Source: Anaeramoeba ignava BMAN
Taxonomy: Eukaryota; Protista; Anaeramoebae
NCBI GenBank assembly: GCA_028826165.1
Contig: JAPDFW010000119.1
Span: 105,526 to 169,525, forward strand
DNA: 64,000 bases
Reading direction: 5' to 3'
Shown here piece by piece: positions 19,355 through 26,207 of this stretch. How positions within the stretch are numbered: the first letter of the stretch is position 1; each line of letters starts with the position of its first letter. The notes under the pieces are model-generated. The model was given only the letters and a program-made list of their open reading frames with translations. It was not told the DNA's origin and made no database searches. The position numbers and the translations under genes are program-made.

Positions 19355-22300
19355 TTATTTTTCAAAAATTTCATCAAAAACTTGTTGAAAAGTCTGAACA
19401 AAAACAGGAGAAATTCCTTGTTTTATAATAGGATTAATACGGTCCCACTCATTAATATTATCTCTTGGCAAGATGACGAAAAAGATACCAGCACGTTTTG
19501 CAGCAATAACCTTTTCCTGCAAGCCACCAATTGGCAAAACTAAACCTGTCAAAGTGACTTCACCTGTCATAGCATAACCAGGTTTAACAGGTTTTTGCAT
19601 AGCAAGGGATAAAAGGGAAGTAACCATTGTGATGCCAGCAGAAGGGCCGTCTTTTGGAGCAGCGCCATGAGGGATATGCATATGAAGAGAACGTTCAAAA
19701 TTTTTATTTTTTGGATCCAATTTATTCAAAAACTGTTTTGCAAAAGAAAAGGCAATTTGGGTGCTTTCTTTCATAACATTGCCTAAGCGTCCTGTGATCT
19801 TCAGACTTCCTTGTTTGTGGTACATTGAGTCTTTCTTATCAGACTTTCCTTTGTTAATGATATTTGACTGAAGATCGGAAAAAATTGTTTCGATGAAAAT
19901 GACCGACCCACCATAAGGTGTCCAACTGAGACCAGGAACCACACCTGGGCCTGGATGGGGATATATGTTCTCATCCTGGAACTCTGGTTTTCCGAGGTAG
20001 TCCATAATTTTCTGTTCATCGAGTCTTACTTGAAAATCCATTCTTTTTTTTTGATCTAAATCAACATATTGAAGTGCTATTTTTCTAAATATTTTTTCAA
20101 TTTGTTTTTCCAAGTTTCGAACACCTGCTTCTCGACAGTATTTGTCGATTATAAACTTGAGAATTTTGTCATCAAAAATTATTTTTGATTCTGGAATTGC
20201 AGTTTGAGTTGCAATTTTTGGAATTAAATATCGACTTGCAATTGCTTTTTTTTCATCTAAAACATAACCAGAAAGTAACATGATTTCGAGTCTATCTAAT
20301 AAAGCTGGTGGAATTGTATTTGTTTGATTTGCTGTTACTATAAAGAGTATTTTGGATAAATCAAATGGGATATCAAGATAATGATCAAGAAATGAACTAT
20401 TTTGAAGTGGATCCAAAACTTCAAGAAGTGCTGATGCTGGATCTCCTTTATAATTTGATCCAATTTTATCGATTTCTTATTTTAATTTTATAAATCAATT
20501 TTAATTTTATAAATCAATTTGAATTTTATAAATAAATTTTAATTTTATAAATCAATTTTAATTTTATAAATCAATTTTAATTTTTTATACCATCAATCAA
20601 AATAACTGGATTATTTGTTTGAACTACTTTTAATGCTTGAATAATTTTTCCTGGTAATGCTCCAACATAAACTCTTCTATGTCCTTTAATTTCTGCAAAA
20701 TCATCTAATCCTCCAACTTAAAATTATAAATTAAAATTATAAATTAAAATAATTAAAATAATTAAAATTAAAATAATTTAAAAATTCTTCTTCAAATTCA
20801 CCTGAAAAACGATAAAATTTCCTTCCAAGTGCTCTTGCAATACTTTTTCCAACTGATGAATTATGTGTAACACTAAAATCTCCTAATAAAAATCTTTGAT
20901 TGCAATCTAATTCAAATCCATAATAATTTCCATATCCAATATAATCAACTTTAATCAAATCAAACAAAATTTTATTCTTTTTTTCTTGTTGATTTCCAAT
21001 TTGTTCAAAATTTTCAATTATTATCCAATAAGAATCGTTTTGAGTTGAATTTCTTGAATAAAATTGATTTTTTCCAAATTTTGTTTCAATTCCAAGAGAA
21101 CGACACAAATAAACAACATCCATCAAAAAATTGTGAGAATTTATATTCATTTTAAAAGAATTTGTTTGATCTATTCTTTTTCCAATTGAATTCAAAATTC
21201 CCAATAAAATTTGGAAACGAATATTTCTATTATTAACTTTATAAGCATCTGGAATCTTCATTTGATCACAAATTTCAAAACATAAATCATGAGGAACTTT
21301 CTGGGAAATCAACGAGAAATAAACATCTTCAGATTTAGCTCCATTTTGATCTAATTCACAAAGTAAAGAACCGAGACGATAGGCATCAAGAGGAACTTTT
21401 TTATCAGGAAAATCTACAGAGACTCGAAAACCTGCATAATGCCTTTTCCAGTTCTCGGATTTCTTTAAATACTTCTTAATAGAAATATCAACAACATCAC
21501 CTTCCTTATTAACATTTTGATTTCCAAATAAATTTGATTTTGCAAATTGATTTGCTTTTTCCCAAATTTTTTGTTTTTCAATAACATAATTTTCTGAATT
21601 ATCAACATGAAATGCTTTTGAATGTTGAATATGGTTTTGAAACCACGAAACAATAAATGCTTTGGTTTTCTCATTCCAAACAATTTGATAAGAATCTCCA
21701 TGGAACATCAATGAAAGTACATGATTTTTGTTGACAATATATGATCCTTGGCTTGATAAATACGACACTTTGAAAAGCTTTCCAAATCCCTTTGAAATTG
21801 ATTTCACATTCCTTTCACTTGAATCATCTCCCATAATTTTATCACCACATTGAATATTTTGAACATTTTTAATTTTTCCATCAAAAAGTAAAATTTTGGT
21901 ATTAAATCCCAAACATTTGCCAACACCAGGAGGGCCCACCAAACAGACAATCTTTCCATAAGGGCCATCCCGAAGATTTTCCACTGCAATAAACTCCAAA
22001 ATTCTTTTTTTTAAATCTTCAAGTCCATAATGATCTTCATCAAGGATTTTTTTGGATTCCTCAAGATTTGTACTTGTTGGTGTAGTTATTCCCCAAGGCA
22101 ACGAAGAGATCCATTCAAGATAGTTTCTGATAACAACTGCGTTTGAATCAAATTTTTCTAATCCTGATAATTTTTCTAATTCTTCCTTGAATACTTTCAT
22201 TGCCATAGTGGATAATTTTTTTCCTTCAATTTTCTTTTGAAATTTTTTGATTTCTGGTTTTTCTTCCGTTAAAGATTCTTTTTCTAGATTGAGATCCTCG

Positions 22301-24073
22301 ATTTTTGATTTGATTAAATCTTGAAGAACTTTGTTTTTTGAAATTGGTTGTATTTGAATTTGGTTAATTTTTTTTGCAATTTCTATTTCCCTTTCTAATA
22401 AATTAATTGCTAGTTTAAGTCTAGTTAAAAGGTCTCTTGTTTCAAGAATTTCCTAAAAGAAATTTAAATTGATAAAATAATAAATCAATATTAAATCTAA
22501 AATATTTAAATCAATAATAAATATTAAATCTAAAATATTTAAATCAATAATAAATATATAAATCAATAATAAATATTAAATCTAAAATATTTAAATCAAT
22601 AATAAATAATAAAATCAATATTAAATCTAAAATATTTAAATCAATATTAAATATTAAATATTTAAATCAATATTAAATCTAAAATATTTAAATCAATATT
22701 AAATCTTAAATATTTAAATCAATAATAAATATTAAATATTTAAATAAATATTAAATATATTTAATCAATAAAATATTTGAATTTACTTGAAGTTGATCTG
22801 CTTCTGCTGTTGTAGAATAAGCAGCTAAACCTGATAACGTGAAAATATCAATTTTTCCAAAACTAGATAAGATTTTCTTTTATAAAAAAAAAAGAAAAAA
22901 AACCAATAAAAAAGTTATTCAAATTCTAATAATAAAAATATTTGATTTACTTCTATTTGTCCTTGAAAATAACTTGGAAGTTTTCGGAGTTTTTCTAAAA
23001 GTTGATATATTTTTTTTCTTTCAGGTTCTAATGTTTCAACTTTTATAGAATTTAAAGGATTCTAAAAAAAATAATAATTTTAAGTTTAATTTTAATTAAT
23101 ATCAAAAATCGGAAAAATATTTTTAATTCAATTTTAATTATAATTTTAATTTTAATTTTAATTTCAATTTTAATTTCAATTTTAATTTTAATTTTAATTA
23201 TAATTTTATAAATAAATTTTAATTTTAATTTTTACAGAAAAAAATTCAATTTTTGCATGTAATCGAGATGATTTAACTAAACTTTTGATACGTATTATTT
23301 CCATAGAACTTAAAGAACTATTCATAAAATTATAATCATTTTTACAAAAAGTTCCAATATCATGCAATTGATTTAAATCAGTAATTTCTATCACTTTTTT
23401 ATTTCGATGTTCTTTTCGAATTAGAAAAGCTCCAAAATAATTATCATTAAAATTTATTGGAATAATTCTTCCTCCACTCATAGAATGAGGATAACTAAAA
23501 GAAATTTTGGGAACAAATGGTCTTTTCTTTATTGGATAAATTGGAATAATATCAGATACTTTTTCAGGATCTTAAATTTTAATTTTAATTTTAATTTTAA
23601 TTTTAATTTTAATTTTTAATTTTAATTTTAATTTTAATTTTAATTTTAATTTTAATTTTAATTTTATAAATGAATTTTAATTTTAATTTTAATTTTAATT
23701 TTAATTTTAATTTTAATTTTAATTTTAATTTTAATTTTAATTTTAATTTTAATTTTAATTTTAATTTTAATTTTAATTTTAATTTTAATTTTAATTTTAA
23801 TTTTAATTTTAATTTTAATTTTATAAATGAATTTTAATTCTAATTCTAATTTTAATTTATAAATGAATTTTAATTTTAATTGTAATTTTAATTTTAATTT
23901 AATTTTAATTTTAGGAAAATTTTTTTTTGTTTTTTACTTGGATTTGTAAATGGTGTGTAAATTGCTTCTGAAAGAAAATCAAAATAATGATATTTTATTA
24001 TAGGATTTAATAAAATTTGTTTTCGGAAAGAATTTTGAAGAATTTTAAACTTTGGATAAGAATGTGATAACAT
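19355..24073 (-). CDS. LONP1: Lon protease, mitochondrial/hydrogenosomal type, 7 exons, intein-containing
   Basis: Exons 24073-23938, 23570-23236, 23061-22951, 22876-22787, 22452-20802, 20716-20591, 20475-19355. Motifs: [29 protein letters not shown], Walker [30 protein letters not shown], catalytic PKDGPSAG and GGLQEK. The N-terminus [19 protein letters not shown] resembles a presequence. Confidence 0.95.
20860..21915 (-). mobile_element. Intein (352 aa) in the Lon Walker A motif, with degenerate LAGLIDADG homing endonuclease
   Basis: GPPGVGK|[13 protein letters not shown] ... FSVTHN|[13 protein letters not shown]. Cys1, block B VNKNH, block [17 protein letters not shown], penultimate His, terminal Asn, Ser+1. 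Removing it restores the canonical Lon P-loop. Confidence 0.96.
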
Positions 24074-24153: not shown

Positions 24154-26207
24154 TTAATCAAAAAAATCATAAAAAAAATCAAGATTAAGATCAGTATCAG
24201 TATCAGTATCAATATCATTTTGATTTTGATTTTGATTTTGATTAGTTGATTCAAGTTTTTCAATTTCATTTTGAAAAAAAGATAAATTATTGAAAAATTT
24301 AAGAATATTTTTAGATTCTTTAATTTCATAATTAGAACCAATAGCCAAATAAAAAATATTTTGAAAAGAATCAGCTAAAAAATAGGGAATTGAAGTTTTA
24401 ATTGGGAAATCAATAGCAACACTTAAAGCTGAAATATCTTGAATTGCATTAACAAGTAAAGAGTGAATAGTCTTGTTTGTGATACTAAGAAATTTAGGAT
24501 CAACAACCATTGAATCTTCATAAAAGGAAATAATTTGAGGTTTCATTTCTAAAGGTTTCAAATTTAATTTATTCATTAAATCCCATTCATTTTCTCCAAC
24601 TATTTGATTTTTAGTAATTATTTTTTGAGTATTCATAATTGTGACTGTTCCTCTAGTTATTTTTGTTGATAAATTTAATGTTTGGAAATAAGGCATAAAA
24701 TGTGGAGATATATTTGTTTGTCCAGCTTCAATTATAACATCTATTGGTGATACTTGATTCGGTTTAAGTGATGTCATGTATTTGTGTTTTTCAAATAAAT
24801 TTTCAAGTTCGTTTCCGCTTAAATTTGTGAATATTAATCCAATGGTTCCTTTCATACTGGGTATTAATTTTTCAAGATTTGGTTTTTTAGGTATTTGTTT
24901 TTTCAATCCTTTTTTTAACAATCTCTATTTAATTTTTTAATTTTGATATTTATATTTATATTTATATTTATATTTAGATTTAGATTTAGATTTATATTTA
25001 TATTTATAATTATATTTATATTTATATTTATATTTATATTTATATTTATATTTATATTTATATTTATATTTATATTTATATTTATATTTATAATTATATT
25101 TATTTTGATATTTATATTTATATTTATAATTATATTTATATTTATATTTATATTTATAATTATATTTATATTTATATTTATAATTTATATTTATATTTAT
25201 AATTATATTTATAATTATATTTATATTTATATTTATATTTATATTTATATTTATATTTATATTTTATATTTATATTTTATATTTATATTTATATTTTATA
25301 TTTATTTATATTTATATTTATATTTATATTTATATTTATATTTATATTTATATTTATATTTATATTTATATTTATATTTATATATTTATATTTATATTTA
25401 TATTTATATTTATATTTTTATATTTATATTTATATTTATATTTTATATTTATATTTATATTTATATTTATATTTATATTTTATATTTATATTTATATTTA
25501 TATTTATATTTATATTTATATTTATATTTATATTTATATTTATATTTATATTTTATATTTATATTTATATTTATATTTATATTTATATTTTATATTTATA
25601 TTTATATTTATATTTATATTTATATTTATATTTATATTTATATTTATATTTATATTTTATATTTTATTTAGATTTATATTTTATATTTTATATTTATATT
25701 TATATTTATATTTATATTTATATTTATATTTATATTTATATTTATATTTATATTTATATTTATATTTTATATTTTAAATATAATTATATTTATATTTTAT
25801 AATTTATATTTATATTTATATTTATATTTATATTTATATTTATATTTATATTTATAATTATATTTATATTTATATTTATAATATTTATATTTATATTTAT
25901 ATTTATATTTATATTTATATTTATATTTATATTTATATTTATATTTATATTTATATTTATATTTATATTTATAATATTTATATTTATATTTATATTTATA
26001 TTTATATTTATATTTATATTTATATTTTGAATTGATTTTTATTACATTTTGACCCATAAGTAAAATTCCTTTATTCAATAATTCTTTTCTTATAATTTGA
26101 ATATTGTAAGTTGGAATAGATTGAAAATTAACAACAAAAACATTATCAAATTGTTGGAAATAATTATCAATTTTTGAATAAAAAATAAGTTTTTTTTCTT
26201 TTGACAT
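24154..26207 (-). CDS. RPLP0: 60S acidic ribosomal protein P0 (uL10)-like, divergent, 2 exons
   Basis: Exon 26207-26046 ([16 protein letters not shown]) joined to 24924-24154 ([31 protein letters not shown]). Acidic tail ends DFFYDFFD. Confidence 0.82.
24925..26045. repeat. (TATATT)n microsatellite filling the 1.1-kb P0 intron
   Basis: Near-continuous TATATT units between the GT and AG on the - strand. Confidence 0.95.

Follow-up and report, generated by a model that had tools for sequence, protein, structure and literature searches.

A probable class-1 intein that splits the Walker A motif of a mitochondrial-type Lon protease, one of three paralogues, in Anaeramoeba ignava

A Lon protease gene of Anaeramoeba ignava BMAN is interrupted inside its Walker A motif by an open stretch of 1056 nt, which raises the question of what this insert is and how a gene that carries it could make a working ATPase. 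We examined this question in a window of 64,000 nt (the whole stretch of DNA analyzed: GenBank assembly GCA_028826165.1, contig JAPDFW010000119.1, positions 105,526–169,525 of the forward strand). An earlier note on the same DNA had described an in-frame, intron-free insert at positions 20860–21915 that splits GPPGVGK/S (here and below, a slash marks an insertion point), and this placement proved exact to the base. We conclude, with a probability of about 0.9, that the insert represents a PI-SceI/VMA-type class-1 intein, which splits the Walker A motif of a mitochondrial-type LonA, one of three paralogues.

The host gene was modeled as follows:

19355..24073, minus strand: whole LonA gene, with 7 exons and 6 GT..AG introns (gene model, with Lon_lid, Lon_C and LONP1 matches)
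24073–23938, 23570–23236, 23061–22951 and 22876–22787, minus strand: LonA exons 1–4 (gene model; without homology support)
22452–20802, 20716–20591 and 20475–19355, minus strand: LonA exons 5–7 (gene model)
20802..22452, minus strand: LonA exon 5, made up of 179 N-extein codons, the intein, and 19 C-extein codons plus 1 nt

The transcript structure is based only on GT..AG signals and continuity of the reading frame; a search of public sequencing runs found the locus in one, stored as contigs, and in no RNA run. Homology searches were run exon by exon (for exon 7, from position 20473 downwards), and the exons were joined for a check of frame and length; the model gives a Lon precursor of 1189 amino acids and a spliced Lon of 837 amino acids. 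By Pfam searches we found a Lon_lid domain (E = 1.3e-18) and a Lon_C domain (E = 2e-62) in the extein. The Walker B motif, ILIDEIDK, spans exons 6 and 7, and the translation contains PKDGPSAG and a second protease motif of 10 residues, the two motifs that hold the S16 catalytic Ser-Lys dyad. No Pfam match to the Lon N-terminal domain was found with exon 2 or with the N-extein part of exon 5, each searched singly. Over its first 30 residues the precursor is basic, with no acidic residue. A long repeat is present at 23673–23823 within the span of the gene.

The C-terminal exon matches human mitochondrial LONP1 with an E-value of 4e-110, compared to 3.5e-83 for the best bacterial Lon. When the N-extein was the query, the search returned animal mitochondrial and bacterial Lon proteins only, with no Anaeramoeba relatives, and the two types scored about alike, so the mitochondrial-type assignment rests mainly on the C-terminal half of LonA. 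Judged by its predicted structure and product, the host is a nuclear, intron-bearing, mitochondrial-type LonA protease; the 7-exon model and the LONP1-like extein agree with the earlier description of a nuclear, spliced, organelle-type Lon. The neighboring gene is ribosomal P0/Mrt4-like. A viral origin of the host gene itself was considered and ruled out by the presence of the genome's own introns, the full LonA protease domain and this P0/Mrt4-like neighbor.

The insert lies in exon 5 and consists of 352 codons without a stop or a frameshift. Its features are:

20860..21915, minus strand: intein of 352 amino acids (precursor residues 404–755), with a Hint domain, a PI-SceI-like DNA-recognition insert and a degenerate LAGLIDADG domain
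21913..21915, minus strand: Cys1 codon TGT, the N-terminal splicing nucleophile, directly 3' of the Lys codon of GPPGVGK
21721..21732, minus strand: block B, N62-x-x-H65 (NKNH), with N62 and H65 invariant in alignment A1 (the intein and seven relatives)
21184..21228, minus strand: second LAGLIDADG motif (R233...G239 ILNS I244 G245), from the PI-SceI profile alignment, column counts and a motif scan
20857..20865, minus strand: block G His351-Asn352 and the Ser+1 codon of the C-extein, from the sequence and alignment A1

Read on the minus strand, the intein starts with TGT (Cys) straight after GGTGTTGGCAAA (G-V-G-K), and ends with CAT AAT (His-Asn), which is followed by TCA TCA (Ser-Ser) of the C-extein. 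The insertion therefore separates K from S within the Walker A loop (GPPGVGK/C...HN/SS), and the termini of the intein are CLGFNTKI...GDFSVTHN. Its exact removal restores GPPGVGKSS; all of the 120 best Lon homologs (120/120) show GPPGVGKTS without an insert.

The full set of canonical splicing residues that the earlier note had named was found: C1, N62/H65, H351-N352 and S+1. Residues C1, N62, H65, H351 and N352 are invariant across the intein family of this genome. Column counts in an alignment of 201 inteins (35 from Anaeramoeba and 166 public), made with a fast MAFFT mode, give Cys1 in 35/35 Anaeramoeba members and 164/166 public members, or 199/201 together, and the block B His in 201/201. 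A search with Hint models had been suggested, and the Pfam model PF05203 (Hom_end_hint) matches the intein with an E-value of 1.9e-15 and a score of 57.9 bits, against a cut-off of 32.1. An AF2 model of the intein has a pLDDT of 87.3 and a pTM of 0.82. Foldseek searches with this model bear out the proposed VMA type: the best matches are structures of PI-SceI (1ef0, 1vde and 1lws), with E-values of 7e-20 to 1e-17 (about 1e-19) and TMq of 0.68–0.76 over the whole model, and the remaining matches are likewise inteins.

Could the insert instead be an unusual intron that is removed from the RNA, so that an intein-bearing protein is never made? LonA is otherwise intron-rich, but the ends of the insert are TGT...AAT, not GT..AG, and it does not contain the satellite-like repeats of the introns. 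Its GC content is 26.6%, compared to 3–12% in the six LonA introns and 30.8% in the exteins. The probability of a 352-codon open frame by chance, calculated from local base composition, is about 5e-16, and 0 of 20000 shuffles were open. The Hint match and the PI-SceI fold also argue against an intron, as does the conservation that the insert shares, at the protein level, with two paralogous inserts and with hundreds of public inteins, and we regard removal from the RNA as exceedingly improbable.

For an intein, the following route can be proposed. LonA would be transcribed, its six spliceosomal introns removed, and the mRNA translated into the 1189-residue precursor, with its P-loop split by 352 residues. 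Splicing would start with an N-S acyl shift at Cys1, after which the N-extein would be moved onto the hydroxyl of Ser+1; cyclization of Asn352 would release the intein, and an O-N shift would make the Lys-Ser peptide bond. The product would be an 837-residue Lon with GPPGVGKSS, capable of binding ATP. We infer both the splicing of the Lon precursor and its timing relative to import into the organelle. According to the main text of Gallot-Lavallee et al. 2023 (PNAS, PMC10710043), three other Anaeramoeba inteins splice experimentally.

Each of the genome's three Lon paralogues has a homologous intein at the same Walker A codon. The other two genes are on contigs C6 and C56, and their inteins are 38–42% identical. 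All three paralogues have common intron positions flanking the intein-bearing exon, and their inteins differ from each other about as much as the less conserved parts of the exteins do (37–38%); this similar divergence, together with the common intron positions, suggests a long residence of the intein in Lon. We found no intein-free Lon gene in the genome. Since all three copies are split, all organellar Lon ATPase activity would have to pass through splicing. The intein would persist because only a codon-exact deletion leaves a working P-loop.

The existence of three paralogues also makes it conceivable that one is dispensable, and that the copy studied here is a dead or ATPase-less paralogue with a splicing-dead intein, with Lon function carried by the other copies. 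Decayed, stop-bearing copies of the same intein family do occur, on contigs C92 and C137, and the endonuclease of the Lon intein is degenerate. However, the splicing residues of the Lon intein are all intact, its frame is free of stops and frameshifts, and the extein keeps its Walker B, lid and protease motifs. Furthermore, because both of the other Lon paralogues are themselves split by inteins at the same site, no intein-free copy could take over. We consider a dead copy very unlikely.

A different possibility is that the intein is maintained as a conditional switch, responding to redox state, oxygen or metal, that gates the activity of organellar Lon. The splicing dependence of all three paralogues in an anaerobic host would be in keeping with this, as would the presence of Cys1 and of a further block F cysteine (residue 338), at a position taken by Gly or His in the seven A1 relatives. 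The main text of Gallot-Lavallee et al. also describes experiments in vitro on another Anaeramoeba intein, in which TCEP was present or absent and Zn2+ and EDTA were among the conditions. But Cys1 is the default nucleophile, near-universal in the family, so it carries no special signal for a redox switch, and the family is found in dozens of unrelated proteins, as would be expected of a selfish element more than of a tailored regulator. A conditional switch is thus highly doubtful, and we give equally little credence to the more general idea that splicing was co-opted to gate Lon activation post-translationally, for instance with a sensitivity to redox state or metals, or with a timing set relative to import. 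If such a gate did exist, the Lon intein would no longer be just a stuck parasite.

The LAGLIDADG part of the intein has diverged from an active nuclease. In Pfam searches, PF05204 (Hom_end) scored 18.6 bits, below its cut-off of 21.1, and LAGLIDADG_3 gave no match in the intein. Cleavage by PI-SceI needs both of its catalytic acids. In a profile alignment to PI-SceI, the position of D326 is occupied by Ile244 in the Lon intein. The first LAGLIDADG motif is LGSLLCEL, with a Glu at the spacing of D218 and without the GDG turn; our reading of this first motif is uncertain, and a residual half-site is possible given that Glu. The Ile at the D326 position and the lack of a GDG turn in the first motif make cleavage activity unlikely, so the endonuclease of the Lon intein appears from its residues to be inactive, with its fold kept. 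Having lost the canonical catalytic residues, the Lon intein is probably an old, immobile resident. A rough motif scan found both catalytic acids in 0/35 of the family members extracted from this genome, compared to 69/166 of the public relatives. If this loss in 35/35 is true, the present spread of the family would require either a nuclease acting in trans, such as one from a virus, or a different route of recombination.

The earlier note had proposed to look for inteins at the same site in giant-virus Lon genes, and related inteins do occur at the matching K/T position in Lon-like AAA+ proteins from GVMAGs. Lon-like proteins are the hosts at 10 of the 80 viral intein loci (GVMAG contigs of IMG/VR). 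Insertion right after the GK of GxxxxGK[ST] is seen at 78 of the 80 viral loci, and at 136 of about 170 junctions in the best 150 public proteins. These viral Lon-like hosts have AAA and Lon_lid domains without a Lon_C protease domain, and are remote from LonA. The Lon intein is 26–47% identical to every public relative over the matched stretches, and 26–34% identical to giant-virus P-loop inteins over its full length.

By FastTree we found an Anaeramoeba-only clade of 18 inteins with a support of 97. In IQ-TREE (C20 PMSF, short search) most of this clade is unresolved and the third Lon intein is split off. An AU test did not reject a tree that unites the three Lon inteins (p-AU = 0.80), and this tree is 34.5 lnL units better than the free short search. 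The Lon intein is placed among other Anaeramoeba inteins and away from the viral Lon inteins, with weak support; a skewed amino acid composition in Anaeramoeba may be drawing its inteins together. The inteins of viral Lon-like genes fall into more than one group, and the starred branches in the tree force at least five origins for them. Because the intein trees are poorly resolved, we draw from them no donor and no order of events.

These relatives bear on the idea that a Lon-like gene carried by a giant virus was a recent, direct source of the Lon intein, which would have moved by allele-specific homing into the common P-loop site. Related K/T inteins in GVMAG Lon-like AAA+ genes, often with intact GDG and DSDG motifs, count in favor of such a donor, and the main text of Gallot-Lavallee et al. 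proposes virus-mediated spread of inteins, with promiscuity attributed to active endonucleases of relaxed specificity. The low identity to any public relative, the multiple origins of the viral Lon-like inteins and their failure to group with those of Anaeramoeba Lon, the signs of long residence, and viral hosts that are remote from LonA and have no protease domain all speak against it, and we think a recent viral donor unlikely. Of the suggestion in the earlier note that the intein is virus- or prokaryote-derived, the part that stands is the existence of giant-virus relatives at the same site; a direct viral donor is less well supported, the nearest relatives of the intein being poorly resolved in the trees.

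The same intein family occupies dozens of unrelated proteins. Prp8 of this genome has five inteins, including one at the site AKWK/TAEE, and there are also inteins in VMA and eIF5B. The Prp8 AKWK/TAEE site is the one that the main text of Gallot-Lavallee et al. gives for A. ignava BMAN, and the VMA and eIF5B inteins are BMAN-only there. That inteins reside in Anaeramoeba Lon proteases and have giant-virus counterparts is already known, having been published in 2023: the main text of that study includes Lon proteases among the Anaeramoeba intein hosts, with intein-bearing counterparts in Nucleocytoviricota. The earlier note had suspected that the Lon intein might already be catalogued. The three-paralogue pattern, the common intron positions and the endonuclease catalytic residues are absent from that main text. 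What we add is the presence of the intein in all three paralogues with common intron positions, the large family inserted after the GK of P-loops, which is abundant on giant-virus contigs, and the apparently dead endonuclease. With every Lon gene dependent on splicing, A. ignava offers a clean natural case for asking if an intein in an essential organellar ATPase is tolerated or exploited.

Among known systems, PI-SceI, the intein of Saccharomyces VMA1 (1VDE, 1LWS and 1EF0), resembles the Lon intein in consisting of a Hint domain, a DNA-recognition insert and a LAGLIDADG domain. Both start with Cys1 and end with His-Asn, and in both the block B His follows a polar residue at a distance of three positions. 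They differ in site (Walker A of Lon, compared to V-ATPase subunit A in PI-SceI) and in the +1 residue (Ser in Lon, Cys in VMA1), and the Lon intein is about 100 residues shorter, has about 15% identity to PI-SceI, has Ile at D326 and does not have the GDG turn of the first motif. Giant-virus P-loop inteins belong to the same family and have the same insertion point as the Lon intein, but many of them keep canonical GDG and DSDG motifs. Class 3 P-loop inteins (cluster 1 of Gallot-Lavallee et al., and those of mycobacteriophage terminase and DnaB) are likewise found in the Walker A motifs of unrelated proteins, and cluster 1 is the main example of non-allelic spread in the text of that study. 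According to the same text, however, the N-terminal residues of cluster 1 inteins are atypical and these inteins are apparently Class 3, whereas the Lon intein has a standard Cys1. This residue, and a match to PI-SceI rather than to class 3, place the Lon intein in a different group from cluster 1, and it probably corresponds to cluster 15 of Gallot-Lavallee et al.

A Lon protease gene on the minus strand has a stop-free frame that runs from window position 22452 to 20740 and reads, in order, [12 protein letters not shown], an insert beginning CLGFNTK and ending FSVTHN, and [19 protein letters not shown]. The limits of the insert are exactly 21915..20860 on the minus strand (1056 nt, 352 codons): its 5' end is a TGT immediately 3' of the P-loop Lys codon, and its 3' end is CAT AAT, followed by two Ser codons. 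The GC content of the window is 18.8% and a stop is expected about once per ten random codons; at the local composition a run of 352 codons would be open with a probability of about 5e-16, and shuffling the insert 20000 times never gave an open frame. An earlier note, made from the sequence alone, had reported an intein here, and on re-reading the frame, boundary codons and residues we found its coordinates and splicing residues to be correct. We rejected the reading of this segment as an intron, because it lacks GT..AG ends, has a coding-like composition and shows protein-level conservation. The surrounding gene was modeled from GT..AG signals and frame continuity as seven exons:

24073-23938, minus strand, Lon exon 1 (gene model)
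23570-23236, minus strand, Lon exon 2 (gene model)
23061-22951, minus strand, Lon exon 3 (gene model)
22876-22787, minus strand, Lon exon 4 (gene model)
22452-20802, minus strand, Lon exon 5, containing the intein (gene model)
20716-20591, minus strand, Lon exon 6 (gene model)
20475-19355, minus strand, Lon exon 7 (gene model)

The model predicts a precursor of 1189 amino acids, with the intein at residues 404-755, and a protein of 837 amino acids once the intein is removed. Database searches used single exons, and joining them served to verify the reading frame. By Pfam the last exon contains Lon_lid (1.3e-18) and Lon_C (2e-62) domains, and it matches human mitochondrial LONP1 at 4e-110, with the top bacterial Lon at 3.5e-83. 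Within exon 5, the N-extein portion matches animal mitochondrial and bacterial Lon proteins at 41-56% identity, and the Walker B motif ILIDEIDK arises at the join of exons 6 and 7; Pfam found no Lon N-domain in the early exons. The insertion site is uninterrupted (GPPGVGKTS) in all 120 of the Lon homologs listed. GC content is 26.6% in the intein and 30.8% in the exteins. The six introns (74-367 nt, 3-12% GC) consist mostly of short AT-rich repeats, and introns 4, 2 and 1 (22453-22786, 23062-23235 and 23571-23937) are almost entirely satellite-like, built of tandemly repeated AT-rich units (about 6-20 nt; 3-7% GC). The upstream neighbor (24157-24921, minus strand) encodes a ribosomal P0/Mrt4-like protein (RL10P_insert, 9.4e-15), whose C-terminal tail has acidic, Asn/Gln-rich repeats.

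The Lon insert is a class-1 intein with PI-SceI architecture. It scores 57.9 bits against Pfam Hom_end_hint (cut-off 32.1) and 18.6 bits against Hom_end, which is below the cut-off of 21.1. One intein used as query against PDB sequences matched PI-SceI and Prp8 inteins, and a profile of eight genomic relatives matched PI-SceI at 1.2e-23. An AlphaFold2 model built on the alignment behind this profile (pLDDT 87.3, pTM 0.82) had PI-SceI structures as its top Foldseek matches (1ef0, 1vde, 1jva and 1lws; E-values of 7e-20 to 1e-17, full-length TMq 0.68-0.76), and the whole model also matched 1gpp, the structure of PI-SceI domain I. Residues ~75-138 (window 21500-21690, minus strand) are modeled as strands at 76-81, 86-93 and 96-103 followed by a long helix at 110-129, and are probably a DNA-recognition region of the PI-SceI type; the intein has no Pfam match to the AP2 family at E-values up to 0.1.

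The splicing residues are complete (Cys1, Asn62 and His65 in block B, His351-Asn352, and Ser+1) and are invariant or near-invariant across the family. In the precursor, the P-loop would be unable to form before the intein leaves. Standard class-1 splicing would begin with a thioester at Cys1, after which the N-extein would pass to Ser+1, cyclization of Asn352 would release the intein, and an O-N shift would leave a peptide bond. The predicted product loop, GPPGVGKSS, differs from the Lon consensus only in having Ser for Thr, both of which are permitted in GK[ST]. From the intact residues, the essential site and the proven splicing of three other Anaeramoeba inteins, as shown by Gallot-Lavallee et al. 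(2023, PMC10710043), we infer that the Lon intein splices. The earlier note had gone on to propose that it could act as a redox switch, for which we found no evidence: the Cys1 that it invoked is the default residue of the family. The only local oddity of the Lon intein is Cys338 in block F, where its relatives in an alignment with seven other inteins of the genome (A1) have Gly or His.

The genome contains three Lon genes, on contigs C120 (described so far), C6 and C56. None is intein-free: in each, GPPGVGK or GPSSVGK is followed by a homologous intein, those of C6 and C56 being 38-42% identical. Their locations and divergence are as follows:

C6 Lon intein, G000:C6:54383-55402 (= L003:1501-2520), same Walker A codon as C120
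C56 Lon intein, G000:C56:335565-336575 (= L002:1501-2511), same Walker A codon as C120, P-loop GPSSVGK
C6 versus C120 identity: N-extein 37.5%, intein 38.4%, C-extein 56-59%
C56 versus C120 identity: N-extein 36.6%, intein 38.5%, C-extein 40-48%

Divergence between the inteins is about the same as that between the less constrained host segments. All three genes have introns at the same positions on either side of the exon that contains the intein, with a phase 1 donor located 19 codons + 1 nt downstream of the intein and an acceptor 178-182 codons upstream of Cys1. A tree uniting the three Lon inteins was not rejected by the AU test (p = 0.80), and was 34.5 log-likelihood units above the tree from a free (short) search. 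The simplest reading is either that the intein entered an ancestral Lon gene once, prior to the duplications, or that there was an old conversion between paralogs. The protease domains of the C6 and C56 proteins each contain a long Asn/Gln-rich low-complexity insert.

Relatives of the Lon intein in the same genome, 27-40% identical to it in alignment A1, are located directly after the Walker A GK of many other proteins (fetched loci L004-L010 and L019-L045, on many contigs). Naming hosts other than Lon from their flanking motifs alone, we found SMC-like proteins, eIF5B, EF1A-like GTPases, ABCA transporters, dynein heavy chains, MCMs, RecQ-like and XPB-like helicases, and other AAA proteins. 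The same family also occupies the DK/TGT loop of P-type ATPases, Prp8, VMA, and a site before the catalytic Cys of Cdc14-like phosphatases (VAVH/C...HN/CKAGLGRTG). One ABCA-like transporter intein (L009, G000:C126:867326-870871, minus strand) lies in two overlapping frames, the N part stopping close to the first LAGLIDADG motif and the C part being read in a different frame. This points to a 1-nt frameshift, caused either by decay or by misassembly of a T run. Dynein-type and SMC-type copies at G000:C92:283245-284248 (L043) and G000:C137:156693-157564 (L044) have internal stops and are decayed duplicates, consistent with the pseudogenized inteins mentioned in PMC10710043.

By searching 1.84 billion representative proteins we found 6778 relatives of the Lon intein, 288 of them below 1e-30, and in the best 150 of these 6778 proteins 136 of ~170 N-junctions follow GK. 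In IMG/VR, more than 537 stretches of viral contigs encode a relative, many on GVMAG giant-virus bins, and the insertion follows GK in 78 of the 80 viral loci fetched. The same-site inteins that the earlier note had suggested seeking in NCLDV Lon genes do exist, after GK in Lon-like AAA+ proteins on GVMAG contigs. Lon-like AAA+ hosts make up 9 of the 150 best public proteins and 10 of the 80 viral loci; in the 13 that we scanned (four viral and nine public) AAA is present in all and Lon_lid in most, and the Lon_C protease domain is absent from all. One 142-kb metagenome contig, L017 (JGI 3300043504, Ga0480319_0000040), is giant-virus-like: its Lon-like ATPase with a P-loop intein adjoins an Rpb1 gene broken up into three ORFs, which itself contains two inteins from another family (Intein_splicing + LAGLIDADG_3), and it also encodes HSP70 and many orphan genes. 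In our tree the inteins of viral Lon-like proteins are interspersed with those of other viral hosts, apart from the Anaeramoeba Lon inteins.

The endonuclease of the Lon intein looks decayed, judging from its motifs. In the profile alignment Ile244 is opposite D326 of PI-SceI (LLGILNSIG versus LAGLIDSDG), and the first motif, LGSLLCEL, has Glu at the D218 spacing and lacks the GDG turn. In a rough motif scan (regular expressions and a fast MAFFT alignment), both catalytic acids were kept in 0 of 35 family members from the genome versus 69 of 166 public relatives; many giant-virus relatives keep GDG and DSDG, and several viral Lon-like copies retain these motifs in canonical form. At least nine of the Anaeramoeba copies, inserted at sites unrelated to one another, have Ile at the D326 position (DSIG or NSIG). 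The missing acids and this common Ile call for an account of how the family spread.

The Lon intein is real and was rightly described by the earlier note, and cases of its kind have already been published for this organism. The 42.8-Mb genome (147 contigs) has at least 41 Hom_end_hint matches, five inteins in Prp8 including one at AKWK/TAEE, and inteins in VMA and eIF5B. These are exactly the features that PMC10710043 gives for Anaeramoeba ignava strain BMAN, which it credits with 103 inteins, five of them in Prp8 (with AKWK/TAEE as a new site), and with VMA and IF5B inteins that are exclusive to BMAN. It also states that Lon proteases host inteins in Anaeramoeba and have homologs with inteins in Nucleocytoviricota, so the Lon intein appears to be already catalogued. 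To this published picture we add the splicing dependence of all three Lon paralogs and the apparently dead endonucleases throughout the family; the shared Ile at the D326 position bears on the idea, put forward in that paper, of promiscuous active endonucleases.
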